This document shows positions 711 to 60,038 of a DNA stretch of 64,000 nucleotides, in pieces (within the stretch, counting starts at the first letter, position 1; every line of letters starts with the position of its first letter). Source of the DNA: Oopsacas minuta. Lineage: Eukaryota > Animalia > Porifera. Location: positions 372,001 through 436,000 of the forward strand of contig JAKMXF010000288.1 of the NCBI GenBank assembly GCA_024704765.1. The letters run 5' to 3'. The notes beneath the pieces were generated by a model. It saw only the letters and a program-made list of their open reading frames with translations, did not search any database and was not told the DNA's origin. The position numbers were made by a program, and so were the translations under genes.

Positions 711-722
711 TTATGTATATTC

Positions 723-3636: not shown

Positions 3637-3656
3637 TATAAAGCTAATTAGTTAAT

Positions 3657-9834: not shown

Positions 9835-12800
9835 TGTTTTTGAAGATACACAACTTCCTTGTTCACCAACAGAATACACTAGCACAAGTTCAAAGGAGGA
9901 AAAATCTAAAAGTAACATCAAATGGTGGAAAAGTCCACTCGTCTCAAATGATACTAAAAATAACCTTTGTGAAAATGGATGGGAGTGTTTGGTATCTAAA
10001 AGTGATATTGTAATATTCAGAAAACCTAAGGAGAATTCTGCAGCTTATATTTACAAAGGTATCAATCTGTTTAAAGTGTAACCTCTATGAACGGAGTGTC
10101 AGGGACGCCGAAAAATGCTACCCGCTTGTGGAGGTTCATTCTTATGGGGCTAGGAAGTTGCTCTTTTCATTTTAACCCCATTTCCACAGGTCCAGTTTGT
10201 GGAGGTTACACTGTATTAGGATTTGTAAACTTCTTTATACAAACCAATTTATAGTTTTTGGAAGAAATTTTGATATATCAGCGGCAGATTTTTTCTTCAG
10301 TCAAGTAAGTATTGGACCTCTAAATAATATTATTATTACTATTAGTATTATTATTGTTCATAGGTAGATAACAGTTACAGGAAGACATGGGATAAATACG
10401 TTTGGGATATAGTATGTTTAGGCGAAGATAAGGAATCAAAGCAACAGCTCTTATATTGGGTTGTCAAGTATCCGGTTAGTTCAAAAGATACGGTGTATGC
10501 CGGTTATAAGCACCATCCTTTGGAAATCGGTTATCATATATATTCCTGTATATTTATACCGGTTATAAGAACATGCATCGCTACTCCTAAGGATGTTCTT
10601 AGTTCTTACGTACAACCGGCATCTACTGTATTGAAAATTTACTTTTATGAGCTCATAAAACGAAACTTTACCCGCATAGAACTATTGAACCTGTGTGAAC
10701 TTTTGGTTCCCGAAAATTGAATTCTGGCGCCTTAAATGAGCTATAATTTTTACATTTTAGTGAATACCATTAATTTCTATATTTGAAATTCGTTGCTATG
10801 ACAATTCTAATAATAAATCTAACGAACTAGTTAGTTTCTCTATTTTGCTACAAAGAAATATATCTCTAAGAGGTCCACGTATCATCACCCCAATTTTTGT
10901 GATCATCAGGAGCTGTCGCGGTTGGGAGAAAAGATTGTGTCAGTACGGGTTGTAGTGCAGCAGCCTCTTGGTCCCCCCAATCCGGATCGGCTTGTGAGTT
11001 CTGATCTGGTCCCGCCCATTGTTGTGTCTGCTGGGCGGCCGGTTTCACTTGACCATCCAAACCCTCGGTCCAGGATTGTGGTTCATACTCTGCCTCGTGG
11101 ACCTGGGGCCCCTCTTGCTCTTGTCTTTCTACGTCAGCAGGATCTCGATAGAAAAACAGATCCACCATTACCTCTGCCCATTCCTTGTCATCCTTCAATT
11201 CCCCACGCATTCTCTTTACCTGTCGATTACATAACACATTTTTTCTAAGTCAGAATAATACTACGATACATTTCAATGATTTCATTCCACCCTTCGCCCG
11301 CTATTAACCTTAGTTTGCTAGCATGCCAATGATGATGTCATAGATCTCCACATTCCTTAATATGGAACTATCTAATTACAGTGTAATCTCGTTAATACGA
11401 ACAACAACAGACGGTCATAATATGTCCGCTTTAACCGGAGTAATATCAATTGAATTACAATTGTAGGGAGCTGATTATGTGTAACTCTTCGTTCGTCTTA
11501 TTCGGAACTTCGTATTAACGAGGTTCTCTTGTATATACTCACCTCTCTAGCTAGTAACCACCACATAAGTCCAATACTGTGATTATTCTCCGTATTACAA
11601 GGAATAGCAATATCGATATACTTCAAATTAGCGCTCGTATTACAAAACGCTAGAGTCGGTATTGCTACGTAGCTGGCCTCAGCTATCGGTTGATGATCTA
11701 TTATTGGATCTGAAACTATGAGTAGGCGAGGTTCCCGAAAGGAGCTTGTGATCTGATTCGTCAGAGTGCCAGGGGTAAAACGTCCGGCGATTGGTGTCGC
11801 TCCGGTATGGGTGCAGAATTTCAAGACAGCCCGTTGGCACTGCTCGTTTCCACTGACCGCCACTACATCGGCAGGATTTTTCACTGCTACAATCACGCGA
11901 GCCGCGAGCAGAACTTTTTCCCAAATTTTCTTGACATCAAATATCGGGATACCATCTGGTCGTTTGGAATGTATGTACTCTTCCATTTGGAAGTTAATAT
12001 TAGCTTTCCCGAGATGTGTTTTGGCTAATAGCATCATTGCTACATCGTTCTTCTTCAGGGCTAGAGCTTGTCTTCTTCCAGACATTCTAATGGTTATAAT
12101 GGTAACTAGATTGTGTTATATGAGATAATGAGATTAGTCATAATAGGGTTGATTTCGCGCTTGTCAAAAGTCCCCCCTAAATTATCCAATAACGGAATTT
12201 CCCGCCTTTTTTGTAAGCCAATCTGACATACAGATATGCTATATATCCCGCCTAAATCTCCGAAGTCCCGCCTATTTTATGAACTCTAATTGTTGTGTGT
12301 GTATTTTAAAAGGCAAAGTTTATCACCAAAATACTCAAGAAATAAGAATAATTTCTCTCAAAAGTTCAAATACCATAAATCCCGAAGAGATAACTGTACT
12401 AGTACAGTTTTTTTGCAATACAAAAACCCCATACCCCCATTAGAAAAAGGTGACTTTCATTAACCCGCACGAAGTTGAGAATACAGTATAGTTTCTACCT
12501 CCCAGAATAAGTGTCTGACCCCAGTGGTGTCGTCACAATGAATGCAAAAATTATCACATTTGTGTTCGTTATCGTAACAGATTAATTAATCACATGTCCT
12601 AAGCCACAATTGAACTATATAACTTTCAAGACACAGACGTGGCATACGTAGACAATATGAAGTAATAAACAACCACCCTGAAGGAAATCTGAGATAATTT
12701 CAAATGCAACCATAAATATGCAAGTCCATTGGAAGCATACGAATATACTAATAGCTATTCTATTTTCATTTGGAAATATGGGACAGAATTCTACTAAGCC

Positions 12801-14746: not shown

Positions 14747-15061
14747 TTACAATAATTATTGTGTCGTATTATTAGCTAATTAGTCAATCAATCTTTTCTC
14801 TTACATGTATATATTGTTTGTGGTAATGGGGGAACGAATATTAGCGTTCGGGACCCCTGTTGACAAGGTGTGAATTTATAGTATTTTAGGAGACGGCTAC
14901 AGCAGAACTAAAAATTATTGATTGAGACTTGAACTTCAATTTTGGTTATTTTAGTCATGTCTAGACACAGATAAATGTGTCCAGTGACACTACTGCTTGT
15001 ACCACTAATAAAAGTGGCAGCAAATAACAAGTTGAAAGTTGAGCCAATAAATATCCATTAA

Positions 15062-15150
15062 TACAGTGAATCCCGATTATAAGAACACCGTCTGGAACTG
15101 GACACAATGTTCTTATATCCGGTATGTTCTTATAACCGGCATTTACTATA
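15062..15150. mobile_element. Dispersed MITE-like family C, representative copy
   Basis: TACAGTGAA...CCGGTTATAAGAACA core recurs near 6040-6170, 10494-10630, 15768-15822 and 37460-37607. Confidence 0.55.
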
Positions 15151-15320
15151 CCAAACTTTTGTGGCACTTCCTTAATAATAGCGGGACATCGTGGACGTAG
15201 CATATTTGTATTAGACTGGTAGGTAGTCGGAATTATATCTATGGTAGGTGAAAATGTAACACAGAATGTAGAATATAACTATATATGATCTGCTATATAC
15301 AAACAGCTGATTAAGCAAAG

Positions 15321-16516: not shown

Positions 16517-16728
16517 ATTCCTATGTAATTTGTATGTGAATGTAATGATATCTATATTTAGCTCATTTTGACATTCCAATGGAGTATAACATTCTTAAAC
16601 ACGGGTTTGTAACCAAGGAAAGATTCTCTTATCTAGCAAATGAATATTTTCAACAAACGAGCTAATAAATAAATAAACACAGCCCCATTCCCATTCTGAT
16701 AAATAACAACAAACAAACACAAATAATA

Positions 16729-16759
<31 letters not shown>

Positions 16760-16918
16760 TAGCACACTTGTTTGTATATATCTAATTTACATCCTCCTAT
16801 AACTACTAAACAACAACACAACAACAGATAACAACACATCCATTCTATTAATGTAAAAACAATAAAAGTACCAGAGTTTTAGATAAATACTAATAAACCC
16901 AATTTCTAATCGTCATAA

Positions 16919-25984: not shown

Positions 25985-26088
25985 TTTTGTTTTTGATAGT
26001 ACATAATGACAGATAAATATATTTCAGGTATATATATATGAACCTATTAACCTATAGAATTACCAGTATATCGGATAACAATACACGA

Positions 26089-36469: not shown

Positions 36470-36957
36470 TTCTAAAATTATTGAATTACTGGGCCTATTA
36501 TTTTCTAAAAATATTTTTAGTTATGAATGGATATTAGCAATTATAAGATTTGGTTTTTATAAAATAACAAATATGTTGGATAAGTTATATCTTCAGCTTT
36601 GACACCTTTATGTTCATAATAGAGCGAATTCCTAGTCCCATACGAACGAACCTCCACGAACAGGGTAGCAGTTTCCGGCGCCCTTGACACCCTTTTCATG
36701 GAGGTCCTTTTTGTTGTAGGTTAGCGACTTAACTTCCCCTTAGTTACGCTCATGTAGTAATGGCATGCTCATACAATGTTCGGATAGATAACTATTGTTC
36801 AAGGTTTTGCCACGACGGGTAAATTACTTCATAGGGTACTCTACTCTAAATATGTTGCCCCTCGGTGGACACTTAATATTGTGTCCCTCAGACCACATAG
36901 AACATGGCTTATGCCACATTTTTCTCCACTCGTATTATATTTTAGTTCAATTTTAGG

Positions 36958-39900: not shown

Positions 39901-41157
39901 GACGCGCCCAATCCTGACACCTCCAAATACGAAACAAATCTCAGCCAATCAACTGTCATTCTAGGCGGGTATGAACACGACCCTGAAAGTGACGAGTGGC
40001 GGGAAATTGCGCCATATCCTTTGGCGCCCACTGCGGCACAAAATACCACCAAAAATAATCTGAAAACTTTCCAGAATCGAATTTCTCAATCGAGACACTT
40101 TTCAATTTTAAGTAATATATTCAAAACAGAAAAAATACCCAAAAATTCCAACTCAAAAGTGGAATTTTCTCAAAGTTTAGGCAGAATACATTCTCCATAT
40201 TGCGGTAACGTCGCTAGACGGATGTCTGAACCGTTAAACATGCGAGTAAGCACAAATATAAACAATATTAACAAGGAATTTGTTGTTGTTAGTAAGTCGT
40301 CTAGACAGAAACATGAGAGTTTTAACGGTATTAGTGGCTATAAAGACAATAACAAGCCTGCGAAAATGCAAGACAGTTATCAAGTTTATTCTATAAAACC
40401 GTCTTCCAAAATTGATACCAATTTGGACCTAAAGATGGACCTACCATCTCTGGAATCAATCGGTGCGCCACCAGAAAATGTGTCGACATCTGACACACAA
40501 ATTGACACTAGTGTAAGCTCGTGTGTATTTGTATCTGACCAGAATACCACAATGGATCTAAGTAACATTTCTGAGCCAGACCCAACTAATATGTTCCATC
40601 CACTCCTGCTTTTGATACCGTTAAGGTTAGGACAGGACAAATTCAACCTTGAGTATGCAAGGCCACTAATGACATGCTTCAAACTGCCACAATCAGTGGG
40701 AATAATTGGTGGTAGACCTAAACATGCCTTGTACCTGATTGGTTACCAGGATGACCATATATTTTATTTAGACCCACACACGACACAATCTACTGTCACT
40801 ACACCACAGGGTTCAGTCCATATACCGGATAAGACGTTCCATACCAACCATGTGGAATCCATGCATTTCTCGGAATTGGACCCATCACTTGCTATTGGAT
40901 TTTTCTGTGAGACTGAGGCTGTTTTTGAGGATTTATTAGACCAACTTGAGACTCATGTCCTATCCCAGAAACCGAAACTATTCGAGATTTCAGATTCAAT
41001 TCCGTTTTTATTCAATCGGCCTAACTCAATCGGAACTAACACCAAACAGGAACCATTCTCATTGGTGGATAAAGACGATTTACTGAATGACGTAATCGAC
41101 CTCGCTTTGGATGAAGATATCGACGATTGGGACATAATCCCAGAGCATATCTCATGA
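36958..41157 (+). CDS. ATG4: Cysteine protease ATG4; exons about 36958-37277, 37651-37814, 38118-38339 and 39869 (or 40181)-41157
   Basis: Catalytic Cys in SDTGWGC, LGRDWKW, YSIHQL, WAGPNTVAQAL, PLLLLIPLRLG, GIIGGRPKHALY and the Asp/His motif YLDPH. Splice phases are consistent. Confidence 0.92.
38420..38607 (+). mobile_element. MITE family A copy in ATG4 intron 3 (left end degraded)
   Basis: GGGTGTAGCCAAATACCAACGAGGTAACCATGG... nearly identical to 7048-7214. Confidence 0.75.
38690..39712 (+). CDS. PI-PLC X-domain (PLCXD-like) protein, probably catalytically inactive, intronless
   Basis: LGTKNSAS...IYAQLQLGVRFLDFEV...LQIVCNG...GEKILLNF follows the PI-PLC-X pattern (GTHNS...EQL..GIR.FDLR...HG), but both His positions are substituted. 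Confidence 0.65.
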   Translation: MAQSTDVSEYNPLLKSITPPIPIIPLYKSIIVTSDHYTKSLRKRLGEIEMRPQLDLTDATLHPYCLQSDVQVHNALYLGTKNSASNSLPAGEKKVTIGIYAQLQLGVRFLDFEVTTLNSELQIVCNGIPLMTGKKLFEILKRFVDEQNERHNKLGEKILLNFRECECKHFYLLPTLELLSDLIKELPPSYLVKREDITENLSEMDGVFIIFGPIDLNLALNGTHAMFNWGSNLLVKVQPRFNGDPSCILQWITHQKRDKFEAFPIPSPQYGNLVWLDISDPLYRGEASHEVGSMKDGGLLFPTEAARFNIISFGSLNSMEITLYMKCYRRQCKNISAVVC

Positions 41158-43013: not shown

Positions 43014-46000
43014 ATGGATTCACTTCCAAATTATCCAAAAGAGTTTGACCCAAAAGAAGTAGAAAAGTTACGTAACTTTCTTAACAAAGCACTTCTATCA
43101 AAATACTTTACACCTTTCCTTAGCAACGGGGTGTATAGAGTGAAAGATCTACAGGAACACGTGAAGGATGAATTCCTATTGAGTGTTAATATGAGCCAAC
43201 CAGAGAGAGACAGGTTCTGGAAGAATGTGGAGCAAACAAGGAAACCACTTTGGAAATTGAAGGTGTGATAATATTATTAGCTCAAATTATTCTTCTGGGC
43301 AAAATGGACCTCCGAACACAGTAGGCTCTGCATAATATAGCCGCCGGTTAATCGGGTAAAAATGGCGTGTTCCCGATGTGAAAGCGGAGTCTACTGTATG
43401 TTTGAGTTCACGACACATTTGTGCCACTTTTCACACCTTATTATCTACTCCTTTAGCAAAAATTCCGGAGATATGAGGATCCTGATTCGAGTATTTATGA
43501 AGAAATTGGACAATCCAACACAACTCCTGTTAGTGGCGCCATTCTGATTAGTCATCAAGAAATAGTGGAATTAGGAATTATTGGTACAGGAAATTTTGGA
43601 GAGGTGTCAAGAGGAATGTGGCGCTATAACCACAACATGGCGCCTGTGAGTTGATAAACAAACAAACTAACTAACTAACAAACAAACAAACTAACACTCA
43701 TAATTGGTGTCAAAATATGAATATATACTACTTCCACTTTTCTAGAAACCAGTAGCTGTCAAAATAGTGTCCACAGTTTCAGGTGAGAACAGAGATCAAA
43801 TTATGAAAGAGGCAGAAGTGTGGAATAAATTGGAACATGAAAATATTGTTAGATTATATGGTGTTACTGTCACACAGCCTTACAAAATGGTATGTTGTTG
43901 TTGATTTCACACCTTGTGACAATATTTTACAAGATATTTAGTTTCAATTCCAATATAGATTATGGAACTAGCACCTAAAGGTTCACTAGACAAGTATCTG
44001 AGGTCTAAAGTTAATCAGCTGTCAATTGAAAGGATGTGGCAATATTCATGTCAGATATCTAAAGGAATGGAATATCTACATTCCAAGAGAATTATACATA
44101 GAGATCTTGCTTGTAGGAATGTATTACTTAGTAATGATACACAGGTATGTTTATTGGCTGTTGTGTACTTAGATTAGTAGCCTGGGTGATTATTCATATT
44201 TTAACACCCTTGTACGGGGGACATAACATATAATCACATACTACATTCCATGAGTCATAGCATTCTATACATGAATATATTCACCAACTCCCTAACGTAC
44301 TTCTGTGACGTGTTATGTCCCAGTTTCCATGGTTACCTCATTGGTATTTGGCTACACCCGTCAGTGAGGGAGGCAATCATTGAAAGAGGCTACTATTCGA
44401 GACAAAGGTGTGAAAATATACATATAACTAATCATTTTTAATAAACCAATGAAATGAGAGGGTTTGTAACAATCTAAGAAGTTCATCTATAAATAGAAGT
44501 GATTACGTCATCATCATTTCTAGTTGTACCAGTCTAGCGCTCGTATCTCCTGATAATCTATAGGGTAACATTCCTGCAAATGTCACAAGTTTGCGCGCCT
44601 TTTCTTGTAACAGCATTATGTCCTGCCTTATCTGCTGATCAGCTGTTCCATGGCCAATCATTTCTTGTGTTTGTTTATAGAGATTGTGTATTGAAATCTT
44701 GATAGAAAAATTGTATTATTGAACCATGGATAATTGCAATGTATTACAGCAACCCTCTATACCTATTTTAACATATTCTGTGGACCACCAAGGGGTTCAT
44801 GTACCCCAGGTTGGGAACCCCTGTATCGCAGTGTACCTCCACAAACAGGGTGCTAGGGGCGCCGAAATGCTACCCCGTTCCCCGTTATATTACAGAGATA
44901 TTCCCAGTTTGTGGAGGTTGCATTTTTTCATTTTGCCAATTTATCCATGGTTCTTTGATATACATTCAAAATGGTCATTGCAAATAATCTGAAAATTCAC
45001 ATTTTTAACATACCATTGTTGCAAGAATGACGTCAGGGAGACTTCTCCTAATCTCTTCCTCCAAGGTGTGAAATTTCGCAATACTATTATCAACAGTTAC
45101 ATCGGATTTAAGCGGGAAAATACCCAAACGGTCCATAATTTCTAGGGCAACATCGAATTGCCCCGATTTGAAATATTCATGGAATTGTGTCAGATCTAAA
45201 AGTAGATAAAAAGTTGTACACTTCTCGCGTGTGGCATTGTGTCCTGTTGTCTTGAATCTGTCAGCTAGTGAGTATGCGTATTGGATTATTTGTTGTTTTT
45301 CTGTGTCTCTTGAGCTTTGAGAAGATGATATTAATTGGGACATAGAATTATTGAGGAGGTCTAACACCTGTGAAGAAATGTAAACAAACAAACAAACAAA
45401 CAAACAAACAAACTAACAAACCTTTTGATGGTTACCAGCTAAATCATATAACTTAATAGCATCAATAACCAATCCATGGTTCTCTGATTTTCTAGCTACA
45501 TTACTAATGACGTCACTGATAGATTCCTTATGAAACTTCTCAATTAATCCTTGTTTCCTGACTCCATCAGGCGCCAAACTGCCTAGCAATAACTAGAAGA
45601 GATTGGAATGTTATAACATAGCAACAGGAAAGGGGTTAGGAATGTACATGCCTCGTATTCTCTTGACTCCCAAACCATCTCAGCCAATGAATTCACGAAC
45701 AAATCTTCACCGCCACCTAATGGAAAATGGTGTGAAAATAAAGTATACATGATTAATCATATGAATATTTCACACCTTCCATGCCACGTAACAAGAACAT
45801 ATATTGTATGGCTTCTCTAGGATCTGTAGTCACAAATTTCCTTGTATATACTTTGATCATTCTAGCTAGATTTATTTGAGGTCCAGTTGGTGTGTCGGTT
45901 AGAAATGCTGCTTGAGCAGTTGATGTTGATTTTATCAGATTTATTTGGTGAAGAGAGATCGCTAGATGGATCGCATGACACCTGAGTGTTTCTATCCGCC

Positions 46001-49000
46001 ACAAGAAGTCGATAGCCCGCTCAAATTGCAGTGATAGACAGAGTATCTAAAAATGGTACACCTTGAAAATTTCTCCATTAGTGTATCTATAATGAATCTC
46101 GCTAATACCAACGGAGTCTACTGTATTCTAAAAATAGAACAACCTGGAAATACAACATCGGTTTTTCATTTGCCCTAAAATGAGACTCTCCAAATTGATT
46201 GGTTATCTCCTGCTGGAATTGACCAATCAATTGTTTGTCTGCATGTTGTCCTTCTGGTAATTCTCCTGTACAATAGCATAGTCTTAGTTTCAACCACAAC
46301 CAATCCTCTGTTTTGGCAGCTGTTACTTCTCTATGTGGGTTCTTTATGTCACATTTAGCGAGTATGCATAATACAGCACGTTTGTATGGGTCTTTGATTT
46401 GAGAGTTTAGTTTCCTGCAAAAGTGGTTCACAGTCAATCCGTGTTATATCTAACACGGATATACTGAAATAACCGCTTATATGGAAGTGTGAAGTTGTAT
46501 GAATATGGTCCCAAACCATCAAAGTAACATACAGTTAACATACAGTTAACTCCTGTAATATCGAAGCTCAAGGGACCATGGTAATTACTTCGATGTAACC
46601 GATGAATATATGTAACTTTGACGGTTTATGACCATATTTGTATAATTCACACTTCGATCCATCCGTATACATACATTTTATCGGTATATAGAAGTAATTA
46701 TAACGATCCCTTTATCTTCAATGTGACTGGAGTTAAGTATATAATTCACTCCAAATATTCCCGAATATATTTAAGCCAGTTTAAGCGGGCTAATACACTT
46801 TTAAGCGGGCGTATTCTTACCAATAATTTCCTCTCAATTGTGCCTCTGCCTTGTGACTCAAATGTCCATCTTGTGCGAACTCCTTCAGGTATCCTACCCA
46901 ATCTGCAATTTGGTTAAGTGCACTCCCCGCACCGGTCAAGCCTTCCCTCAAACTTCCACAACGCATAGCAAAGAATAAAACAGCCCATAGCGGTTTTCCG
47001 TCCGAACTTCCATCTTCAAATCGTATTTGTGAGGTTTCGGGGGATAATAATATATTCAGATATGCCAGAACAAGTTGGTAGGGACCCGGGACACCAGTGC
47101 GTCGCGCCAGAGCCGGATGGGAACTTACGATATTCTCCATAAACTCCATATAACGAACCTCCAAATACGAAATACTTTTTCGAAGTAATTTGCTTTGTAA
47201 TGGAAGCGAACGAGGCGAGTGTAGATCCAGATCAGCTGATAAATTGGGTATATCAGTTTGTGCACGAATTAACTGCCAAATATCCAACATTCGTGCATTC
47301 TTATTGCTCAATGCAGTTGCTAGGAAGCTCTCAATCAAGTCTGGATGTCCGCCTAGATATTTTTTCGGGTAAGGGCTGCTCTATCAATTTGGTCTCCACC
47401 TCCCACATACTGGACTTAAGGAATTTGACACCTTTCAATAATCCCTACCCTCATATCTGAGGCAAAGTTTCTTATTAAAGTGATCAAACCCAGTCAGGAC
47501 TGGGAAGGTGGGAGGGGGCAATTGGTTACCTTTGAGAATCGCATCGGTATATATATACAGCTGTTTGGCATATGCTATTTCGAAACTATCCAAACTTGTC
47601 CTATCAACCATTGTCATTGGTCCAACTGTCATTTTTTGGCGCTCAATCACTATGTCAGTCAAATTCTGATCTGGTCCCAACGCGCCAAGGATTTTCTCCT
47701 TTTGTTTGTCCCAATCATCGTCTACTTGGTTCCATAATAGTTTCTCACACTTCTCTTGTACAGAATATCTAAATTGAGCTTTTATGACACCTATATGCTT
47801 ATCAGTTATCTAACCATGGATGGTGGATTTAGTAAATCTGCTTGGATATTGGAGGACAATTTTTGCCAAACAGGGCGATTGTTTTGTCGCCATATTTCAA
47901 ATGTCAAGATTGTTAATTTTGACTTGTCCACCCTAAGCCACTGACACACACACAAACAGACTAACAGGAAGACAGACGAAGAGACAGACAGACAGACAGA
48001 CGGTCTTGTCAATTTTACTCGATTTGTTACTCACCTGCTTTCCTTCACAGCTGCTACGAGAATATTCTCATAAGCGCTTTTAAGAAAACTTGAGAGGTCG
48101 ATATCTTTCTCTTCAGAGGGTATCTATAAATAGAAACTTAGTTCCAATTGGAACTTGGTAAATTAATTATTCCTAACACTTATCTCATCGTTTGGCTAAA
48201 TCTGATGAGAATAAGCAATTAGATTGCAGCCTGACAAACAGATGGAATTCACATTACATGTAGGCACATGACCTTTATGATAAAAGTGGAGCATTTCCCC
48301 ACATTCGACTGCCACTTGAGTGTCATAATATTACGTGTATAAAGCATATACAGTGGTGGATTTTGGCGCCTACATGAAACCTATGTAGGACGCTGAATTT
48401 TGTTTTGGTGGTAAAATGGGTAATTATAAATTCGTTTCGCCTGGTAGGTATAATTATGGAAATCGGCTGACTTGGTCGAATTTCTTGGTCGCGTGAAGGC
48501 CTGCGAGACGCTCATCCATCCGTGGTGGCTCTAAGCCACGTGATCCCAATAGTTTCACTGCCTGAAGGTCTACATTTTCTTTTGATGCCAGAGGGGCATT
48601 TTTTGTCAGAAGTTTGGATGCTGCATCTTGCAATTGTTGTAGATTTCTATTCAAAGTTGGTAATTCCTTGGTTACCAAGCCTGTGGATCGGAATGCTTGT
48701 GCTTTTTGTAAGAGTTCATCAAATGAACCTGGTCCTTGTGACATAGGATTCCTATAACAAGAATTCTAACAAATTAATTATTATCCTTGGTACAAGTGCC
48801 AATTTGCACATAGGGAAATCTGCCAATTGGAAATAGTTGTAATTAGCGGAACATTTGACGGGACCATTCATACTTGCAATTTGTCTACAAAAAAGTGAGA
48901 CATTGAACTCAATAAGTGCGAAAAGGTGAGACATCTCGCCAAAAATGTAATTGAAATATATTTTGTGAAGAAAAATAGCAGTGTTGCCATCGAAGTTATT

Positions 49001-52000
49001 TGCCACATTATTGAAATTTCATATTCTTGCCACAGACACAACAGTTCTTGCAATGTACATGCTATATCCATGCCACGCAGTCCATATTTATGTCTAAGAC
49101 CTGTAAAATTCATGAGGCAAGTTCTTGCAATGCTACCAAAATATTTAAAAATAGATACAAAAATTGGCTTCAATATATTATACATGTGTTTTATCATAAT
49201 ATACACTTTATGGGTGTATAATAATTACAAAATTATACAAGTGTTACGAGAATATTTCGTTGTGGTTCGATTTCAAACTCCTAATTGAGTCATAAGATTA
49301 ATAACAGTCCTGATAATCATCAATTCATCCAGCTGAGTCCTAATTTTAGCTATTTTAAAGTGTCCACGTTTAATTCCTGACAACTTTAACCTTTTTACCA
49401 AAACTGTTGATTCATCTTTACCCCTTTTATACTTGCTCCTCCTCCGCCAGGTGGTATTCTCTCTAGAACATTGACAAATCAAATTACAGTTTTGTTCCTT
49501 ATCTCATTTACAACTTTACCTTTTAAGAATGTCTGTTAATTTATTGAAATATTTACTTTCAAGTTTACCCGCAATTACTTTATTTATTTCAAACACATTT
49601 GGCGCACATCATGTGCTGAGCCTTGAGTGCTAAAGCCACTTTAACCACTTTTATAGAATCGAACAAATGTTCGACTTTTTGATAATTTTTGTTTCGTTAC
49701 CAAGGAAACCGCTTCCTTAATTATAGTTACGGAATGTAATACTTGCTAATGCAATATAATGTGGCTATTTTTTTCTATAATTTTAATGATATAATTACAT
49801 GATTCAACAATCTATTTTAGGAATTATACTGTAACCTTTTGACACAATCAGTTTCATATTTGTAGACCTGTTATTATTCAACCAATATAGACAAAACATT
49901 TGCATATTTCAAATCTAAACACTCATGAAAATTATTTAATATTTACATATTTACGTTCTGGATGGCAAAGGCGGATAAACAATTGAGTGTTGACGAAGAG
50001 TTTATCAGCAATGTAGATTCTAAAATATATCATTTGAAGGAGCAAGTCAAAAAGGATAAAGTTGAGATCAACGAAAAGTTTCGAGAATTAATACAGTCCA
50101 TACTGCAATGTCAAGAGAATGTTTTGGAAAGAATGGACGATACTTTGCATGAGGCTATAAGCGAGGTGACTAATCAAACTATCGAAATCACAAAATTGTC
50201 AGCAAATAAGGAAAATTTCAAAAGTGTGGGGAATGTCGGCATAGTAGATGAAATTCAAAACCAAATTCAGGATTGTAAGCTCCATGGCAAATATGTTCCA
50301 GAAATCCACATAAATTGGAAAATTGAACCACTTACGAAAGAGTTAGGTGAATTATGTCAAATAGAACCCACAAACCATCCTTATGCTTATTTAGGGGAAG
50401 ATTTGAATAGCATCAAAGCAGAAGGCATGCTTAAAAGCGTACCTACATCTTTCGAAATTGATGCGCGTAATGGAGATGTCTATCTTCTTTGTAATGAAGA
50501 TTCAGAGAATTTTGACTTCAGAATTTTAGTTGTTGATAAACTTGGCAAATCGAAATTCGATAGGAAGCTCGAGAGGAAATTCTGTCCAGTTGGCATGTGT
50601 GTGGGTGAAAATTCCTTTTTTGTGTCAACTAGTGGTGGCAGTGCCAAAGCTCAAATGGACTCTCACAGAAAAGAACTCCCAGTCGATACTGAAATCCAAC
50701 AGTATCAGGAAAATATCCTGAAGTTTGATAAAGAGAATGGAAAAATGGAAAACTTTCCAATAACTGATGTTAAAGAAATCGGCCTAATTGCATATGAACC
50801 TAAATCTAAATCTTTGTTCTTGCTCACCGGCACAAAAAATTCCCCTATTTTGCTTGTTTTCGATTCGGAAACAATATCGAGAAAGGCAAGTACGAATTTA
50901 GAACTGAGGTCTGGATATATTTCCTCTGCCCCAAAGATTCAAAAAATTGAAATTTTCAACGAAAATGTCATTTTGTTTTACGATAAATCCAAATACATCG
51001 ACGTTTACGATTTGGAAGGAAGACGTTTGTCATTTTTTCCTGATGGAGAATTTATTTCTCAGCTCACAACATCCGACGCTTGGGGAAATATCTTGGCATT
51101 CAATAAGAAGTCTAATGTCATGAAAATAATGGATAAAAATCACAAACTGTTGTCGCAGAGTGTCATCCAGTTAGATTGTGATCCAATAGACCTAAAGTTC
51201 AACATTTCAACTCACAAAGTTCTTTGTTGCGGCCTTGTGAAGGAATCTAAACTGAATCTAGTTCATTTATACATATAGTATTTTCTAATTTCGTTGCAGC
51301 AATATTATTTACTTCGTCTCCCTTTGAACCTTCCACAAGTTGCCTCCCATGACTTTTTCGAAAAGCAGAATTTGCCTCGCAGCCGCAGCCCCTTCCCCCT
51401 GTAAGGGAGTATTTGAACGGCCCCTAAGCAATCCCAGTCTGAGTCAAAACAAATTCTCTCAAACAAACAAATATACTTCACACTGAACAATATTATCCAA
51501 TTAGTTAACAGAAATTTATACTCATAAACATTAAGTAAACATTCCACACATACTTGTCATCACCATGGCAGCCTAATACTCAATTTCCTTCCTGAGTTTA
51601 GTGATCATCATTTCGCGTTTGAGTGCGTCAATTCTTGAAAACTCAATTTTTGTTACTTTGTGTTTATCAAAAACTTTTACATCCGTTTCGGCGATCAGCC
51701 GTGCAACTTCCCAGTCAGCGAAGTCAAAAACTTCCCCCTCAATTGCATACCCTTTCATTTCTTTAGCCACACGCTCTGCTTCCAAAAGCAACAATTTTGA
51801 TACTCCTCGTTTTTGGAAATTTACACTTACGGCCACTGCTTCTAAATATATAATTTTCTTCATTTCATTCTCTATATTTTCCATATAATGACTGATTGAG
51901 AGTGAACCGATCATTTCATCGGTTGCCTTCAGAAATGCGATTAATATTCTCCCTTTTTCCCGTGTTTCTTCAAAAATTTCGGGTGTAAACCTCACATATT

Positions 52001-55000
52001 TTTGTAAATCAATATTTTCGTTATAACCCTTGTCAGAGTTAAATGCATTGTTTACCATCTGAATGCATTCTAAGGAAGTTGATTGGTCAACATCTCTGAA
52101 AATTACTTCATGTTGCTTGATTTTTGACACTTCTTTTGAGGCCATTTTTTTTGGAAATTTTTTTTCACGAATTTATATTTATTTTTGCATGTTGTCATCT
52201 ATAAATTATTTCATAATAATGATTGTATTTTGGGGAACCATAGGAACACAGTTCTCATTAATTATTTTATTTGGCGCCTAATACGTGTTAATTTGATTAT
52301 ATAAATTGACATCGATATGTAGATAGATCCATCAAACAAAATATCGAATTGAATCACTTTTACATTGTTTTTACATTGCCGCCAAATTTATATATATTAC
52401 AAAAACAAATCCCGCGTGTTTGACCCTCATATGGCGCTAAAAATATTAAAGTTCCAGTAATGGCGCTCAAATTTTTAGGAGCTTTAATATGCGTTAATTA
52501 AAAAATCATATTTAATTGGTCGATTCGCGCCCCTCTTGTCAATATCATTTGACTTTAACTAATAGAATCGTTGATTTGAGTGAATACTCATTCTATTTTC
52601 ATCTGTCTCCCTTTGGGTTTGGCGCCTGAATTTCATAAACTACAGGAAATATTCTTTTCAAAGATAATTAATCTGGCGCTCTTCAGCTAATAACCATTAT
52701 GTATAAATATCAATATATGTAAATTTACAGGTCTTGGGTGGCATAACTCATCCTACGACCATCTGACCACATTTATTCAATATGTGTACTCCAGACTATT
52801 CATATTAAAATCATGCTAATTTGGGGAAAGTTTGTGAAAAATGTTTGGACCGCTGGCGTAATCTGTCCCCCAACCTGGTGTTAATTGGTCCCTAAGGGTT
52901 CTCACACAGCTTGTGGCTGAGAGAAGGTTCGATGGTTTGTAAACACCCTTAAAGTGGAATGTGCCCATAAATTCCATTTTTCCCCACTATCTTGTCGAAA
53001 ATTAGTTCAGTCAAACTGTTATTCTCTCCCTAACAACCAATAGTTGACTAGGAATGCAAAGTTCTGAGATGCTAGCCAATCTAATAATCACAAACCAAGC
53101 AATGAATCGTGGAAATTGAATTTGTACAAAATGGTTTCTAACTTTTTAGGTTTTAAATAACTTCCTTACAATCCTAGAAACATGAAAAGGGTTGATTATA
53201 ATAAACCCATATTTGTAAGAATATTCTATGGCTCTGCGACACTATTTACTTCCCACATCTGTTCCAAATACGAAGAATAATGTGACACTATTGTTTGTGA
53301 CAACAATTATGTTTTATCCTGTTGTTTACGAATTCTTATAGAAATTGTTTGTTTACTGTTAGTGACACAAATATTTGAAAATTTGGAAATCAGGTTTGGC
53401 ACCTAGCGGACACTGAAAATATTCACACCTTTTGAGAGATTAAAAAGTGAAACGTTGAGCAAATATTCGTTTGTTAATTTCAACTTAGAACTCGCACTAA
53501 ACTGATATATTTTCTTAGTTACTAAATTGGCAATAGGAATGTTCAATTTTGTAGACCTCTCACTAACAAACCAGATACGTCTAGGCTATTAAGGTATTAC
53601 ATAGCAACCAAGATTAGCATTAGAATGTATGCTCGATAGTTCACAACAGTATGCATATGTTTCCACATAGTTTTATTATCACCATAGCACCTTAATAGTA
53701 TTATGGAATGCCTCTTTAACCTTATACGGAGATTGGAATTTGTATTTATAATAACTTCACCCCTGGGGCGTGTTCAGAGATTTTATCCACAAAATGGTTG
53801 AGCCACAATTCATGCCACATTTGAAACCCTCCAATCTGATTGGGTCATAAAATTACTTGAAAATAACATGATGAACATCCTTATGACTAACCAACAGGTT
53901 TCAGAATACACTTGCTGTTACCTCACGTCACTTATCTGTCAAGAAATGGTTTCATATTGAACTTAAACAAATAAGATTTTTGTTGTTTGTGAACCCAAAA
54001 TGTTTATTGCCATTTTTATGGCATGTTGAATAGATTAAAATTATAGCATTGATGGTTGCCTTAGATAGTGGTCATTCATCTTTTGAATATTATTTGAGAA
54101 TTCGTATGGTCTCTTTGAGATATTTTGCTACGCGTCCGGACTGAATGAGGGATCTCGTAAGAACTTTGCTATAGGATATTTTACAGGCCCCAAGTTTGGG
54201 TACCTGGGGGATCTGGAAAAGTATCAAGAATTCTGTGTGTTGTCCTCCTAGTTTGATTATGTTTCCGAAAAATTGGCGCCTTTATGGATTTGACCTCTAA
54301 CACACCTCAGGGTGGTCTATTGAAAAGTGTCGAATTCCAAACCACAGTCCTACATGGTTGTTTTTAAATTGGCCACTTTGGTAAATAAACATATGTCACA
54401 GCAATGACGTGAAATTCGAATTATTTGTAAGTAGTTTTTGGTTACAATTGTGGATTTCTGCCTTATCTGCTTACAATCATAGAATTACATATATATGTAA
54501 CCTTTTGGTTCCATTAATTAGCATAGCTTTATCTATATGATGTACCCAACTAATTGATTTTTAAGTATTTGAGGTTTATGCGTAAGTTGTCAGTTTAGAA
54601 ATGGAGCATTTTCCAAGAAGTAACCCGCGTATTTCGCTTTTATATGGCGCCTAAAAGAGAACTATTCCAGTAACTGGCCCTTAAACTTCAGTACTTGTGA
54701 TAGAACATGTAAATTTTTATATATTTCATTGAATAGGAATCCTTTTGTCCTATTCTCGTGTGATGCATGCTTTGTAGTATTACACATTCCTTCCATTCAC
54801 CATAGCAACCATGAAAACGTCTTAGATATTTTTGATGATTTTTCCTTAAAATTGATTTGATTTGCAATTTCTTATACCCATTAGTATTTCTTTACAAAGG
54901 TTGTGCTTGGTTGTTAATTAAGATGGCCAGTTCAGCAGCCATAAAGGACACAAAGTGCCGACCCTGAGGCTCAATTGGTGCAGGATCAATATGTTACGGT

Positions 55001-58000
55001 CAAAAAGTGCTGGCTCATACATTCCTAGAGAAAACCCTGTTTGCGTCACGTTTTTCCATGATTTGCGCATGATTGCCCGCGTGTATCGCCAAACAATCAT
55101 TTAATCATATTTGAGCGCGTATTTATAACAAAGTTCAATTGTTCAAACCCCAAACTCTAATTTTCAAATCACTTAAGTTTTGGAATGAAGTGATATCTCT
55201 AAAACTGCTTATAATTGTATTAACGTGATATCTCCGCACAGCCAAATTGCAACTTCTTTAATTTACTTAAAGCAGTTTCCACATTATTATTTATAGAAGT
55301 TTGCGTAAGGTCCTGGACAATTATTATAATTTTGAACATTAAGGGGTAGTTGTATAGCAAACACTTTCGACACAGCTCGTGTCGAAGGAGTTTATTGAGT
55401 ATCATTCCTCACAAAAATATGAGAAAATTATCACCAAAACCCGCTATATTGACTTGTATTGTTGTTGTTATTATTAATCTGTTTACAACAATAATTCATT
55501 CTAAACAAAAAATAATTAAACCCAAGCTTAATTCAGTTACAAAATTCATTTCTTAAATACCAATCAATTCCCATTAATCAATAAATGTCAATCATTCAAC
55601 TGTTTAATAATTAAATATTCATATTTACTATTTTGTATACAATTGGCGACGAAATATGATTAATTCACGCCTCACTACTCCCTTGATAATTGAATATTTT
55701 GAAAGTTTTGTTCATTTTTCTGAGAGTTTTTGATTTCCTTTCTTTTCCAATAATTTCATTTTGTTCCTCAAAACTGTGAATTTCATTTTTGATTTCGAGA
55801 ACTGATTTTGATTGGAGGAGAGAAGACATTCCAGATGGCGCGTTCGGTTTCAAATACTCAATCGCCCGCCTAGAATTATTATCCCGCAATTTTATATCAG
55901 CTCTAAATTCAACTACTAACGTCTCTACTACATTCCATTTCCCAGATTGCGTTGCTAGGTGTAGAGGTGTAGAACCTGACACTGACCGGATGTCAATTAA
56001 GGCGCCAGAAGTTAATAACATTGCGATAATATCATTCCGACCCTTTTTTGCTGCCCAGTGGAGTGCGGTGTACCCAAAAATATGGTCCGCACAGTTCACT
56101 AAATGTGTGTCTCGCGTTAAGAGTCTTAAAATAGAATCCGCATCACATTCTCTGGCGCTTTTATTCCACGAATTCCTATCGTTCTCTTTGATCTCTAAGG
56201 AAGCTTCTAAATCCAAACTGCTGGAATTCAGTGAGGACTCTAAGGATTTTTCTGGCGAATATGTCGGCTGCTCGCCTGTACTTATTCGCTTATGAATCCA
56301 TTTCTTGTTGTTAAAAGTGTCAAAAATGGCATGAATTGAGTGTCTGTGTTTGTCACTTTTTTGGGCTTGTAGATTTATTTTATTTTGTAACTCGTCTAGA
56401 TCTTCTTTCATCAGCTGTTCCAAATTTTCAGATTTTACTCTTTGGTGATTGCAGTTGGATTTTGGTACTCCACCAATGAACTGTAATTTCGTCTCTTTCC
56501 GAGATGACGATCCTCGTTCGCTGTTCGAATCATCACTCCATTTTGTATCCACGTATAGTGGAGAACTTGTTTGACTGAGTCGCTTAGGAAATTTTATTCT
56601 GCTATTTGCCCCCAAGTGGTCTTGTGGTGATGAAATATCATATTCTCTACAAATGCCACTTTTATTCAATTCATTCAAGAGCTCTAGCGACGCATTTTTT
56701 TGGAAATTCGTTTGACGAGATAAAATTTCAATCATTTTAAAACCCAGTTCTTGTATAATATATAGAAATTGGCTAGTAGCTGATATTTATATACTATTAA
56801 GACTATTTTAAACTGGAACTTAAAATGGAACTAAGGATTCTAGGGACTTTATATGAATCTTTCTATGTGTGTAAAATATCTTATTTTAAATTTACATATG
56901 AATATTACTTTGAAAAGCGTTTTGTTGGTGTCCATTGTCGAATTTTTTTGTACAATGTGGGTAAACACTTAATTGCCAACTTTGGCGCCTTTCATCATTG
57001 AAAAATTGTTCATCAATTTTAAGGGGATCCCCAAACTCCTTCCCTTCTTCACGCTAATTTATATTATTTATTCTTTTAGGTTAAAATTAGTGACTTTGGG
57101 ATGACACGATTCCTACCCACTGAACAGGACTTGATTCAAACTTTCACACCTCAAAAGGTCCCATATGCATGGTAATATTCCTAGAAATACACATAAATTC
57201 ATATATTTCGAGAGGAAATGTCCTCAATGCAAAAATCCACGAAAATCGTAAAATTATGCCACTTGTGGTGACCTGTGCGGACACCTTAAAATTCCAAATT
57301 TTGATGCCTAGAAGGGTGTCATTAATAATGCTATCCAATTTGTAATTTTATTTATTGATGTAGTTCATGATATGAACTATATGGTTACCCGCCTAACGCC
57401 CACACCGCGTCACAAAAACACCCGCCAAATAGAATGGAGTTTTAGTTTCAATTCAAACCGCAGAAACTTTAATCGGGGTTTTAATCAATTAGGACTGCTA
57501 TAGAGGTGTTGGAGAGCGGGCAATATTCTAATGCAAATGATGTTTGGAGTTTTGCTGTAACACTTTGGGAGATATTTTCACATGGCGCCAAACCGTGGAA
57601 GGATTTAAATGTAAAGCAAGTAAGTTATACTGGACCATGGATGATATGATTAACTCTATTTGTTAAATGAATCAAGGATATTATGGGTGAATCTTACTCA
57701 CAAGTGGAAGTAGATTATGATGGTCAAAAAAGGTGAAATTCCAAAATGGTGGTCGCTGTCCAATTGGTTTATCCAGGAATTCTGCACTTTGTGTCCTTCA
57801 TGGCTGCTGAACTATAGGTGTCTGCCACACCTAGATTGAGGGCGCTGACCGCCTGTGGCACATGACTATTAGGCAGTTTTGAGTATATTTCTAATTAGGT
57901 TCTTGCTCAATTACAGATGGAAAACAGATTGGAACAACCATTTATTTGTAGTGAAGAAATTTTCTCTTTGATGTCAAGGTGTTGGAATAAGGAACCAAAG

Positions 58001-60038
58001 GAGAGATTAACATTTACTAAAATAATATCACAACTTGAGAGGGTAACAACAAACACACAAACACACAAACAAACAAACAAACAAACAAACAAACAAACAA
58101 ACAAAACAGATAAACATGCAAACAAACATACAAACAACAAACAAACAGACAAGCAGACAATCAATCAAACAAACAAACAAACAAACAAACAAACAAACAA
58201 ACAAACAAACAAACAAACAAACAAACAAACAAACAAACAAATACACAAACAAACCAATGAACAATATCTCTTATAGATGAAGCCTCAGTTTGCTATTGCT
58301 AAGATGGACTCTCCTTCCAACTTAGATGAGGATCAATGTGTCCCTTATAGGAAAGATGACATCATCAATATTGTTGAAAAGTGTGTTTATTGTTGTTTGT
58401 TGTTTGTTGTTGTTTAAGATTGTTTATTTAGGAAATTAGGAGATTATTGGATAGGACAAAGTCAAGTCAATCTTAAATCTGGATATGTATTATCTTCTGA
58501 TATGGAGACGGACACTAGGAGTGAGTTATCTACTTTTGTGCCAATTCTATTTAACACCTCTCTCTTGAGAAAGTTGGGGACTTCAAAACTGATCTGTGAC
58601 CTCTGAGGGAGGCTAGATGGTGCCCTGATTGGATACTTATCCCTTTGTTGTCTGTATGTAACATACGTATGCTTCATCATGGATTTCCTTCTTTCTCTTA
58701 GAAATCCATGCAATTCAAAGAATCAAATCCAAACGAAAAAAGCAACGAAATGTACCGACACCTCCACTACCACCACCACCACCATCAGAATATCAAAATT
58801 TGGATGATTTTGCCCAGTTTAGAAAGAAAAATATTGAACATGATGGTGATTCAGAACATCCATATGATAATCTAAGTGGATTTCAACAGGAGAATAATCC
58901 ACCAGATGATGAAACACCTGATATCGTTTATGAGGAACCTGATACTTTGAGCAAACCTTCAAAAGATCAGTAAGTTGCCTCCACCACTTTATCAAATGAA
59001 ATTTCGTTCCCTTTGTATTCGATTTTGGATATTTTCATATATTTTATATTTATCACCAAATTATATCCCCCGACTATTTTATCTTTTCCCCGCCAAAAAA
59101 ATAGGCGGGGAAATCATTAATAGGCGCTAAGTTAGTGATTTACTGGCGCGTGTTTTTAGAAGATATTTCTCAGTGTGTTTGGCGAATAGAATGAAGATAA
59201 CAGATTCTGTTGGCTATACTACCATGAGTCCTGGAGGAGTATTAGCAGAGAATAATGTGGACAGAGAACTGGAAGAGCGAGGTCTAGTTGGAGACGAGAG
59301 TGGATCTGAAAGTGAAGACCCTCCTTATCAGGAAATTGGTTTGTGGAAGGGTCGTTTGAAAGTAGAGTATACTGTATTTATGTATATATTTTAGCTAGAA
59401 GCTTCGATGCCTACGAAACACATCAAAGACAGGCAGATGAAGACAGTGACGGCTATCACCTACTTTCAGAAATTGACACGATTACATTACGAAAAATCGA
59501 CGGGGATTACAAACCGAAAAATGCATTCTATGATGATACTATTAATAGCGATTCAGCACTTACCCCTGAACAATTAACAATGAGAAAAAGAGCCAGTAAA
59601 ACTTTCGAAAAACGAGGAGATTTAAATCCTCCTCGTAAAAATAATTATGAAAATTCGCCCACATACCCGAAACCAATTCCACCACCTAAGTCCAATAAAC
59701 TGAAACTATTTAGCCGACAAAACACTGACACAAAAATAGTGAAGAAATATTCCAGACCCATAAATGAATCGATTTTATCCGCGGAATTTCCCCAAATTCC
59801 TGACAATGAAATAAGTGTAATTCTAGAAATGTCTTTGGGAAGTTTAACCGAAGCGAGGAAAGATGCAAAATTTCGTATTTTCCGTGAACACATGCTGGAA
59901 CAAAATCCAATGCTACAATCTGTATTTTGCTATGACGTATTTCAAAAATCTAATTTTGACTCGGAAAAAGCAGAAAATGTAATAATGGAAAAATATTCAA
60001 AAAGACGGGAAGATGGCTGCTATGAATATTTATCTTGA
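43014..60038 (+). CDS. TNK2: ACK/TNK2-like non-receptor tyrosine kinase (SAM-kinase-SH3-Tyr-rich tail-UBA-like)
   Basis: Exon 43014-43262 is a SAM domain. It is followed by GTGNFG (from 43457), VAVK, and [16 protein letters not shown] ending at 44144. The gene resumes at 57080 with VKISDFGM...[26 protein letters not shown] and CWNKEPKER, then SH3 exons at about 58278-58530 and a C-terminal UBA-like segment. The 3' exon boundaries are approximate. Confidence 0.85.
44170..44400 (-). mobile_element. MITE family A copy (inverted) at the start of the large kinase intron
   Basis: Reverse-complement match to 7017-7214; terminal GGCTACTATTCGA at 44388-44400. Confidence 0.8.
44503..48744 (-). CDS. 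NUP93: Nuclear pore complex protein Nup93 (multi-exon)
   Basis: Starts FDELLQKAQ...[11 protein letters not shown]; contains [37 protein letters not shown] and [15 protein letters not shown]. The last exon, translated by hand, is [28 protein letters not shown] with stop at 44503-44505. Confidence 0.93.
49962..51278 (+). CDS. Coiled-coil + NHL/beta-propeller-like protein (TRIM-NHL-like without RING/B-box), intronless, 438 aa
   Basis: Helical heptad-rich first ~110 aa, a W...L...LG.L linker, then beta-rich repeats (PTSFEID...[27 protein letters not shown]). Confidence 0.6.
   Translation: MAKADKQLSVDEEFISNVDSKIYHLKEQVKKDKVEINEKFRELIQSILQCQENVLERMDDTLHEAISEVTNQTIEITKLSANKENFKSVGNVGIVDEIQNQIQDCKLHGKYVPEIHINWKIEPLTKELGELCQIEPTNHPYAYLGEDLNSIKAEGMLKSVPTSFEIDARNGDVYLLCNEDSENFDFRILVVDKLGKSKFDRKLERKFCPVGMCVGENSFFVSTSGGSAKAQMDSHRKELPVDTEIQQYQENILKFDKENGKMENFPITDVKEIGLIAYEPKSKSLFLLTGTKNSPILLVFDSETISRKASTNLELRSGYISSAPKIQKIEIFNENVILFYDKSKYIDVYDLEGRRLSFFPDGEFISQLTTSDAWGNILAFNKKSNVMKIMDKNHKLLSQSVIQLDCDPIDLKFNISTHKVLCCGLVKESKLNLVHLYI
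51573..52145 (-). CDS. GNAT-family N-acetyltransferase, intronless, 190 aa
   Basis: Motif A: [29 protein letters not shown], preceded by a beta strand MIGSLSI. Confidence 0.8.
   Translation of the reverse strand: MASKEVSKIKQHEVIFRDVDQSTSLECIQMVNNAFNSDKGYNENIDLQKYVRFTPEIFEETREKGRILIAFLKATDEMIGSLSISHYMENIENEMKKIIYLEAVAVSVNFQKRGVSKLLLLEAERVAKEMKGYAIEGEVFDFADWEVARLIAETDVKVFDKHKVTKIEFSRIDALKREMMITKLRKEIEY
55665..56735 (-). CDS. Ankyrin-repeat protein, SOWAH (sosondowah)-like, intronless
   Basis: [17 protein letters not shown] and [14 protein letters not shown] ankyrin pair after a disordered N-terminus. Confidence 0.75.
   Translation of the reverse strand: MIEILSRQTNFQKNASLELLNELNKSGICREYDISSPQDHLGANSRIKFPKRLSQTSSPLYVDTKWSDDSNSERGSSSRKETKLQFIGGVPKSNCNHQRVKSENLEQLMKEDLDELQNKINLQAQKSDKHRHSIHAIFDTFNNKKWIHKRISTGEQPTYSPEKSLESSLNSSSLDLEASLEIKENDRNSWNKSARECDADSILRLLTRDTHLVNCADHIFGYTALHWAAKKGRNDIIAMLLTSGALIDIRSVSGSTPLHLATQSGKWNVVETLVVEFRADIKLRDNNSRRAIEYLKPNAPSGMSSLLQSKSVLEIKNEIHSFEEQNEIIGKERKSKTLRKMNKTFKIFNYQGSSEA
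58044..58260. repeat. (AAAC)n microsatellite-rich intron
   Basis: Long imperfect ACAA/AAAC array. Similar tracts lie at 7643-7689, 16190-16280, 42300-42420 and 45385-45420. Confidence 0.9.

Follow-up and report, generated by a model that had tools for sequence, protein, structure and literature searches.

Complete genes nested in host introns of the glass sponge Oopsacas minuta, kept in related species and showing a suggestive relation between guest strand and intron content

The closest described counterpart of the gene nests considered here is the genome of the glass sponge Aphrocallistes vastus, for which 2,432 nested genes (12.4%) have been reported (Francis et al. 2023, PMC10282587). For Oopsacas minuta the same report gives 83 nested genes, a low figure that it ascribes to the annotation method; it also discusses leader use for a ctenophore, and its main text has no table of guest strand against intron number. 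For Drosophila melanogaster such numbers exist: 71% of nested genes are antisense to their host and 28.7% lie on the host strand, and a single exon is found in 72.5% of the same-strand genes versus 37.4% of the antisense ones, for which selection against mis-splicing has been argued as the cause (Lee & Chang 2013, PMC3814207). Here we analyse a 64-kb stretch of the O. minuta genome (G000:C288:372001-436000, hereafter the window), taken from an assembly of 61,460,524 bases in 365 contigs. The window has a GC content of ~37% and contains ~27 genes as judged from open reading frames (ORFs) and Pfam scans. Three of these, a STARD7-like gene, ATG4 and an ACK/TNK-type tyrosine kinase gene, are hosts that carry other, complete genes (guests) within their introns. 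An initial annotation of this DNA had named the same three hosts and placed seven guests in their introns, with strands and intron status that our analysis bears out; its count of seven guests among ~25 genes was nevertheless too low, since 11 of the ~27 genes are nested once the first exon of the STARD7-like gene is placed.

Our reading, to which we assign a probability of about 0.72, is that the window displays the ordinary layout of hexactinellid genomes, in which old, conserved hosts have a few long introns, each with one or several complete and independently expressed genes. The nesting itself is real, conserved and ordinary for the clade. O. minuta and A. vastus belong to the same class, and both have short introns, ~60% single-exon genes, many complete intronic genes and extensive microsynteny; compared with the A. 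vastus report the window is denser in nested genes, and that report does not describe the present loci. Dense and systematic nesting, as proposed by the initial annotation, has thus already been published for Hexactinellida and is also kept in the related glass sponges described below; neither the architecture nor the constraint proposed for it is new. What is absent from the literature is a strand-by-intron table for a sponge, together with guests that are old housekeeping genes and not young, narrowly expressed ones. Drosophila guests are typically young, fast-evolving and testis-biased, whereas among those described here are the housekeeping genes RPSA, QARS and NUP93, joined elsewhere in the genome by RARS, ATG12 and a Rab, and the guests show conservation from one hexactinellid assembly to another. 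Same-strand guests are a minority in both animals (28.7% in the fly, 32% here). A likeness also exists to the spliced-leader operons of nematodes and tunicates, in that several same-strand genes share one transcribed unit, but here no leader was seen at the guests, the majority of which are antisense, and splicing of the host takes place across them.

The guest coding regions lie wholly inside single host introns with host exons on both sides, as is evident from RNA joints, Pfam coordinates and tblastn, and the guests are intact according to their family matches and orthologues. The most direct evidence comes from the STARD7-like gene. Read contigs from four runs of one sample were placed on window positions 9600-15400 (5,801 letters). 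One run, X4, behaves as RNA: its word depth peaks at exons, and it is the sole run with GT..AG joints. The other three behave as DNA, with flat depth and no joints. Short dispersed repeats are present at 10124-10140, 10538-10575, 12403-12432 and 15106-15147, and in every run the DNA contigs break off or skip at these places, generating false joints (for example 10140>15124) that are unrelated to splicing. The plus-strand GT..AG joints of X4 are 10056>10253, 10473>13590, 13635>13842, 13877>14147, 14246>14412 and 14496>14662, and a further intron of 59 nt (10305-10363) is revealed by a loose contig end at 10307. Of these joints, 10473>13590 spans 3,116 bases that contain RPSA on the minus strand and DCUN1D3 on the plus strand; it is the host junction that the initial annotation had predicted, now seen in the RNA-like run. 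Joining the exons by script gives an open frame of 345 aa that ends at 14744-14746 and reads ...LLYWVVKYP/ to the left of the long intron 4. Hence the STARD7-like pre-mRNA is transcribed through RPSA and DCUN1D3, including the DCUN1D3 poly(A) hexamer, and the intron with its guests is removed. The idea that host transcripts ignore the poly(A) signals of their guests therefore stands at DCUN1D3, in the one host with RNA.

Within intron 4, RPSA has its own intron, seen in X4 as a CT..AC joint on the minus strand (11217>11541) at very high word depth. No joints occur inside DCUN1D3 in the X4 contigs, and its orthologues are 61-70% identical, one of them being a complete transcript ORF. X4 word depth over the two guests is several-fold to ~100-fold that of the host, contig depth being a poor measure. 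The family assignment of the host is modest and was made exon by exon: exon 4 has PCTP (phosphatidylcholine transfer protein) as its best PDB match (E 0.012) and exon 2 weakly matches STARD4 in the PDB (E 1.3), pointing to a START domain, while single exons of this domain are too short for Pfam and gave zero Pfam matches.

The 5' end of the STARD7-like gene lies outside the window. At the acceptor of exon 2 (tttcctacctag/T at 9835), where X4 depth rises from 128 to ~1,700, an X4 contig carries 25 extra letters that are not present in the window and that occur on C288 at 364755 (+), 368910 (-) and 371347 (+). The copy at C288:371347-371371 closes an ORF of 100 codons that opens with ATGATG and has GTGAGT next to its end, and its frame continues into exon 2. 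This match puts exon 1 at least 10.46 kb upstream, with the consequence that the caspases and QARS are guests too: intron 1 holds three intact caspase genes and the multi-exon QARS gene, all antisense. The 459-aa caspase has an orthologue with Peptidase_C14 in a related sponge (L027; 40% identity over 497 aa), and QARS is distributed over many ORF pieces in a split layout that is alike in L027 and L028. In both of these relatives, exons 2-4 and 5-9 of the host flank RPSA and DCUN1D3, with QARS and caspases upstream. Exon 1 itself is present in three copies within ~7 kb upstream of the window (G000:C288:364455-364779, 368910-368934 inverted, and 371047-371371; L004, L005 and L006). Two copies are identical over 500 bp and the third is inverted, with its donor GT changed to AT. 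This segmental duplication points to duplications within the nest, and the caspase array seems to have been duplicated along with exon 1.

ATG4, on the strength of profile collinearity, splice sites and conservation, is a real host, predicted to be spliced across its PLC-X-like guest. Upstream of the guest, three ORFs at 36946-38362 match positions 2-50, 52-102 and 104-155 of the Peptidase_C54 profile, and downstream the long last exon matches positions 143-275. The Ephydatia muelleri ATG4 is collinear by tblastn, with residues 18-88, 86-125 and 125-169 upstream and 190-381 downstream. Intron 3 (38340-39867) is bounded by GGTAAGT...TTTTAG and is in phase 1. The 340-aa guest ORF had zero matches in a Pfam scan, and its label comes from a protein atlas that places it with PI-PLC-X clusters (features 0.96, TM ~0.6). 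Eight relatives of the guest are 38-49% identical. The order ATG4-N, PLC-X-like, ATG4-C, on one strand throughout, recurs in L001, L003, L009 and L010; L002 has a PLC-X-like paralogue that is not nested.

The same three lines of evidence identify ACK as a real host, and imply splicing across four guests. A SAM_TNK domain (43014-43265, E 1.8e-07) lies N-terminal of the tyrosine-kinase domain. The PK_Tyr_Ser-Thr profile is matched at positions 30-79 and 79-142 up to 44145, and at 141-170, 171-213 and 213-258 from 57080, making five exons; Pfam gave no confirmation of SH3, CRIB and UBA parts. The 12.9-kb intron has the boundaries ACACAG/GTATGT ... TTTTAG/GTTAAA in phase 0, and would join the protein as ...NVLLSNDTQ/VKISDFG.... 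The split kinase with NUP93, the TRIM-like gene, the GNAT gene and the ankyrin gene between its halves is also found in L008, and the upstream half with the same guests in L011 and L012. NUP93 pieces in these three loci are 77-87% identical to those in the window. The 3.5-kb segment at 52145-55665 has a low GC content (33-34%), no ORF >80 aa and no conserved block against the three relatives in tblastx and blastn. A partial second copy of the ankyrin gene (its last 50 codons) lies at 61723-62529, beside a run of N at 61877-62484, and is probably an assembly duplication at the gap.

The relatives used in these comparisons are ENA assemblies of other sponges, presumably hexactinellids, with 38-87% identity and a gene order in common with this genome (loci labelled L001-L003, L008-L012, L027 and L028). 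All three nests are kept in them. One guest nevertheless differs in orientation. The TRIM-like gene is sense to ACK in the window and antisense, on the strand of NUP93 and GNAT, in three relatives (L008:11085-12437; L011:3815-5467; L012:4920-6269), always between NUP93 and GNAT. It is 37% identical to its relatives versus 62-87% for the neighbouring genes; among the three relatives GNAT is 77-82% and the TRIM-like gene 63-69% identical, versus 62-65% and 37% against the window. The three relatives group together against the window species, so that the inversion may have occurred on either side. The gene is a single ORF in both orientations, so that its absence of introns is not a consequence of sense placement. 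The coordinates of hosts and guests are collected in Table 1.

Table 1. Hosts and guests of the three nests. Positions are those of the window unless stated otherwise.
Feature	Position	Strand	Basis and remarks
STARD7-like (START-domain) host, exons 2-9	9835..14746	+	RNA joints, open frame, PDB match, relatives
STARD7-like exon 1	G000:C288:371070-371371		Outside the window
STARD7-like intron 1, window part	1..9834		Whole intron at least 10.46 kb
STARD7-like exons 2-5	9835-10058, 10255-10304, 10364-10474, 13591-13635	+	
STARD7-like exons 6-9	13842-13879, 14149-14248, 14414-14498, 14664-14746	+	
Caspase, 310 aa, single ORF, guest in STARD7-like intron 1	1445..2377	-	Peptidase_C14, E 1.3e-27
Caspase-like, 359 aa, single ORF, guest in STARD7-like intron 1	2557..3636	-	ORF and sequence likeness to adjacent caspases
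Caspase with long N-terminus, 459 aa, single ORF, guest in STARD7-like intron 1	4006..5385	-	ORF; L027 orthologue
Glutaminyl-tRNA synthetase (QARS), multi-exon, guest in STARD7-like intron 1	5500 (approximate)..9438	-	tRNA_synt_1c_R1 and tRNA-synt_1c on separate ORFs
RPSA (ribosomal protein SA), two coding exons, guest in STARD7-like intron 4	10869..12085	-	Ribosomal_S2 match
DCUN1D3-like, single ORF starting MGQ, guest in STARD7-like intron 4	12778..13512	+	Cullin_binding, E 1.9e-33
ATG4 host	36958..41157	+	Exons end or begin near 37278, 37640-37819, 38078-38339; then 39868-41157
PI-PLC-X-like, 340 aa, single ORF, guest in ATG4 intron 3	38690..39712	+	Protein atlas
ACK/TNK-type tyrosine kinase host	43014..60038	+	Kinase domain interrupted by intron 44146-57079
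NUP93, ~ten coding exons, guest in ACK intron	44506..48765	-	Nic96 match, chain of ORF pieces
TRIM-like coiled-coil/propeller, 438 aa, single ORF, guest in ACK intron	49962..51278	+	Weak TRIM_CC match
GNAT acetyltransferase, 190 aa, single ORF, guest in ACK intron	51573..52145	-	Acetyltransf_1; orthologues 62-65% identity
Ankyrin-repeat protein, 356 aa, single ORF, guest in ACK intron	55665..56735	-	Ank matches; L008 orthologue 57% identity

This arrangement raises the question of whether the strand of a guest is related to its intron content. DCUN1D3, the PLC-X-like gene and the TRIM-like gene, all sense, are single ORFs, and RPSA and NUP93, both antisense, are split over several ORFs, just as the initial annotation had described them. 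Counting only the guests named there, three single-exon and no intron-bearing sense guests stand against two of each kind among the antisense guests (Fisher one-sided P 0.29); with the guests of intron 1 included, the antisense figures become five and three (P 0.34). With 60-63% single-exon genes genome-wide, three of three sense guests would be expected to be single-exon 22-25% of the time.

A larger sample was obtained by a host-first survey, based on own-genome Pfam domains whose collinear, same-strand pieces lie >1.1 kb apart, in which the type of guest was not used for selection. Both strands of the gaps were searched for ORFs no shorter than 75-80 aa, these were scanned with Pfam, and transposon remnants were excluded. 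Gaps were obtained from Adaptin_N, Cullin, Cpn60_TCP1, MCM, tRNA-synt_1, Myosin_head, Kinesin, HECT and UCH; in the same own-genome search SNF2, HSP70, PI3_PI4_kinase and DHC_N2 had no domain gaps >1.1 kb, TRAPPC10 (PF12584) had zero matches, and ~110 of the best 128 kinase-domain matches (Pkinase) were uninterrupted, making this family unsuited to host finding. All sense guests of the survey are single ORFs: two bZIP_Maf genes in a cullin gene, a TRAF-like gene in a CCT subunit gene, an AIG1 GTPase in an MCM gene, an arginyl-tRNA synthetase in a class-I synthetase gene, two NHL-type genes and one MCM-like gene in myosin genes, an ABHD16-like gene that is open from the upstream HECT exon, and a RING protein gene in a USP gene. 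Antisense guests spread over several ORFs are a prenyltransferase beta, an ARHGAP20-like gene, two TRAF copies and an ALKBH-like partial ORF. Antisense guests with a single ORF comprise a 229-aa ORF without family, an ankyrin gene, three TRAF, a G-alpha, three NHL, a ZnT transporter, an MCTS1-like gene, ATG12, a PRK-like kinase and a Rab. A scan of the small sense ORFs in the survey gaps returned zero hidden multi-exon sense guests. Three more sense guests, DUS2 between two GTF2F2 halves, GPN1 and GTF2H2, are also single ORFs; they were not found host-first and stand outside the tally.

For window and survey together, 13 sense guests are single-exon and none is intron-bearing, versus 19 and 8 for the antisense guests (one-sided P 0.029). 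Counting tandem paralogues once gives 11 and 0 versus 15 and 6 (P 0.060), and accepting in addition only the clear intron cases gives 11 and 0 versus 16 and 5 (P 0.10). The sense share of guests is 3/11 in the window and 13/40 (32%) with the survey. Set beside the Drosophila proportions of 72.5% and 37.4%, the single-exon fractions of 13/13 and 19/27 found here are not yet statistically secure. The claim that sense guests offer no splice sites, as the initial annotation put it, is thus at chance level in the window, and the trend among the 40 guests runs in the same direction. The strand rule is a reasonable tendency to which these 40 guests lend weak support, suggestive but not settled.

A related point concerns the 3' ends of same-strand guests. 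The only canonical poly(A) hexamers 3' of the two sense guests that abut host exons (13567-13590 and 39848-39867) are ATTAAA at 13567 for DCUN1D3, 17 nt before the host acceptor AG, and AATAAA at 39848 for the PLC-X-like gene, 14 nt before it. The distance from guest stop to host exon is 78 nt for DCUN1D3 and 155 nt for the PLC-X-like gene, and with so little space the proximity of hexamer and acceptor is only mildly unexpected. At 14-17 nt, formation of the guest 3' end and use of the host 3' splice site would physically overlap. In the mechanism that we envisage, each guest would be transcribed from a promoter of its own and have its 3' end set by its own poly(A) signal, and host transcripts would bypass the signals of same-strand guests, so that the whole guest leaves with the intron. 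Same-strand guests have probably been filtered for lack of introns, as internal splice sites on the host strand would lead to mis-splicing; antisense guests may keep theirs.

Several points weigh against the layout and mechanism outlined above. RNA support covers the STARD7-like host only and comes from contigs, one per joint. The exon-1 junction is a 25-nt overhang of one contig, and an orthologue of exon 1 was not found in the two relatives L027 and L028. An ORF-based survey favours single-exon guests and under-detects multi-exon ones on both strands, introns in untranslated regions are invisible to it, a multi-exon sense guest is harder to separate from host exons, and a single ORF is no proof of an intronless transcript. 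Finally, the strand trend has a P of only 0.03-0.10 (0.29-0.34 in the window), and some of the split antisense cases, namely the two TRAF copies and the ALKBH-like ORF, could represent pseudogenes or partial matches.

Among the alternatives, the one that deserves most weight accepts the nesting and regards the strand rule as an effect of base rate and small sample, without a splicing constraint. We consider this a real possibility, albeit one with the odds against it. Single-exon genes make up 60-63% of the genes of O. minuta and A. vastus (PMC10282587), the great majority of the best kinase-domain matches are uninterrupted, the P values within the window and for the clear cases with paralogues collapsed are unimpressive, and the TRIM-like guest lacks introns whether sense (in the window) or antisense (in the three relatives). 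A base rate alone, however, fits less well with intron-bearing guests numbering 0/13 on the sense and 8/27 on the antisense strand, with a probability of 0.001-0.02 (0.6^11 to 0.7^13) for such a run of single-exon sense guests, with the failure of the small-ORF scan to uncover a multi-exon one, or with the agreement in direction with Drosophila (PMC3814207).

The other two alternatives concern the nests themselves. Same-strand guests might not be independent at all, but cut from the host primary transcript as in a trans-spliced operon, with a leader at the guest 5' end and polyadenylation of their own. The hexamers close to the host acceptors at DCUN1D3 and the PLC-X-like gene lend this some appeal, since formation of the guest 3' end might compete with splicing of the host there. 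We nevertheless consider it very improbable: the loose contig end at 9835 matches a cis exon located on C288 itself, that at 12403 (a 19-mer) is a dispersed repeat found on three other contigs, leaders were reported for just 4% of the A. vastus long reads and no single one dominated (PMC10282587), and DCUN1D3 has a word depth several-fold over that of the host. A spliced leader at the STARD7-like nest was accordingly rejected as the source of these loose ends. No shared leader was seen on internal genes in the X4 contigs, although contigs have little power to reveal rare 5' ends. Least credible of all is that one or more hosts are artefacts, separate or decayed gene halves that flank other genes by accident. 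In its favour, RNA was placed on only one of the three hosts, and the public O. minuta annotation has no more than 83 nested genes (PMC10282587); against it, each half is without essential parts of its domain and the halves join up with an overlap of just a few profile positions, canonical sites in matching phase border the introns, both halves are 63-84% identical in other species with the same guests between them, and the STARD7-like gene, the least certain host, is the one confirmed by RNA. We therefore retain the ordinary hexactinellid layout, with hosts spliced across independent guests, as the preferred reading.

Other nests and long introns were observed elsewhere in the genome. At G000:C66:417277-424864 (L048:2004-4046), collinear pieces of a class-I synthetase gene enclose, on their own strand, a complete single-ORF arginyl-tRNA synthetase gene of 681 aa, with the ALKBH-like ORF antisense beside it; the stretch includes an assembly gap of 211 N. 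At G000:C302:147436-149628 (L058:1-1692), the ABHD16-like lipase ORF runs for 564 codons with no stop from the upstream exon of the HECT ligase, and the HECT domain picks up again 1.9 kb farther on. Within a kinesin motor domain, a 1.2-kb intron (G000:C221:143552-144784; L055) contains ATG12 (106 aa) next to an MCTS1-like PUA protein gene (184 aa), both antisense. Six TRAF-like genes are arrayed in a 9.3-kb intron of a CCT chaperonin subunit gene (G000:C343:74603-83943; L041): one is sense, and of the five antisense copies three are intact and two are split. Small tandem arrays of caspase, NHL/TRIM-like and bZIP genes likewise occur in the introns of hosts, as though gene families expanded there. 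Kinesin motor pieces at G000:C304:378334-442993 (profile positions 1-131, 123-266 and 254-327) are collinear, share a strand and are separated by 28 and 36 kb; they could belong to a single, very large host gene or be three fragments, which makes the host uncertain. The 12- and 20-kb adaptin introns at G000:C199:215981-249530 (L029-L032) contain transposon genes and not cellular guests, namely inverted MULE transposase copies, a Tc3-type HTH and a zinc-finger ORF; these introns, and the gaps L045, L056 and L063 with transposon remnants, were left out of the tally.

The immediate gain from this analysis is better gene models: the public annotation has 83 nested genes, yet eleven are present in a single 64-kb window, and the STARD7-like gene spans ~15.7 kb, with its exon 1 beyond the caspase array and QARS. 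A wider but modest question is whether the mis-splicing constraint described for the fly also acts in an early-branching animal, on guests that are old housekeeping genes and not young testis genes. It is conceivable, though in our estimation unlikely, that the rule in hexactinellids is near absolute, with same-strand guests essentially never having introns in spite of being old, essential housekeeping genes, and with a poly(A) signal placed on the host 3' splice site imposing a built-in choice between completion of the guest and splicing of the host. If this were true, glass sponges would offer a natural setting in which to study how splicing and polyadenylation stay apart in overlapping transcription units.

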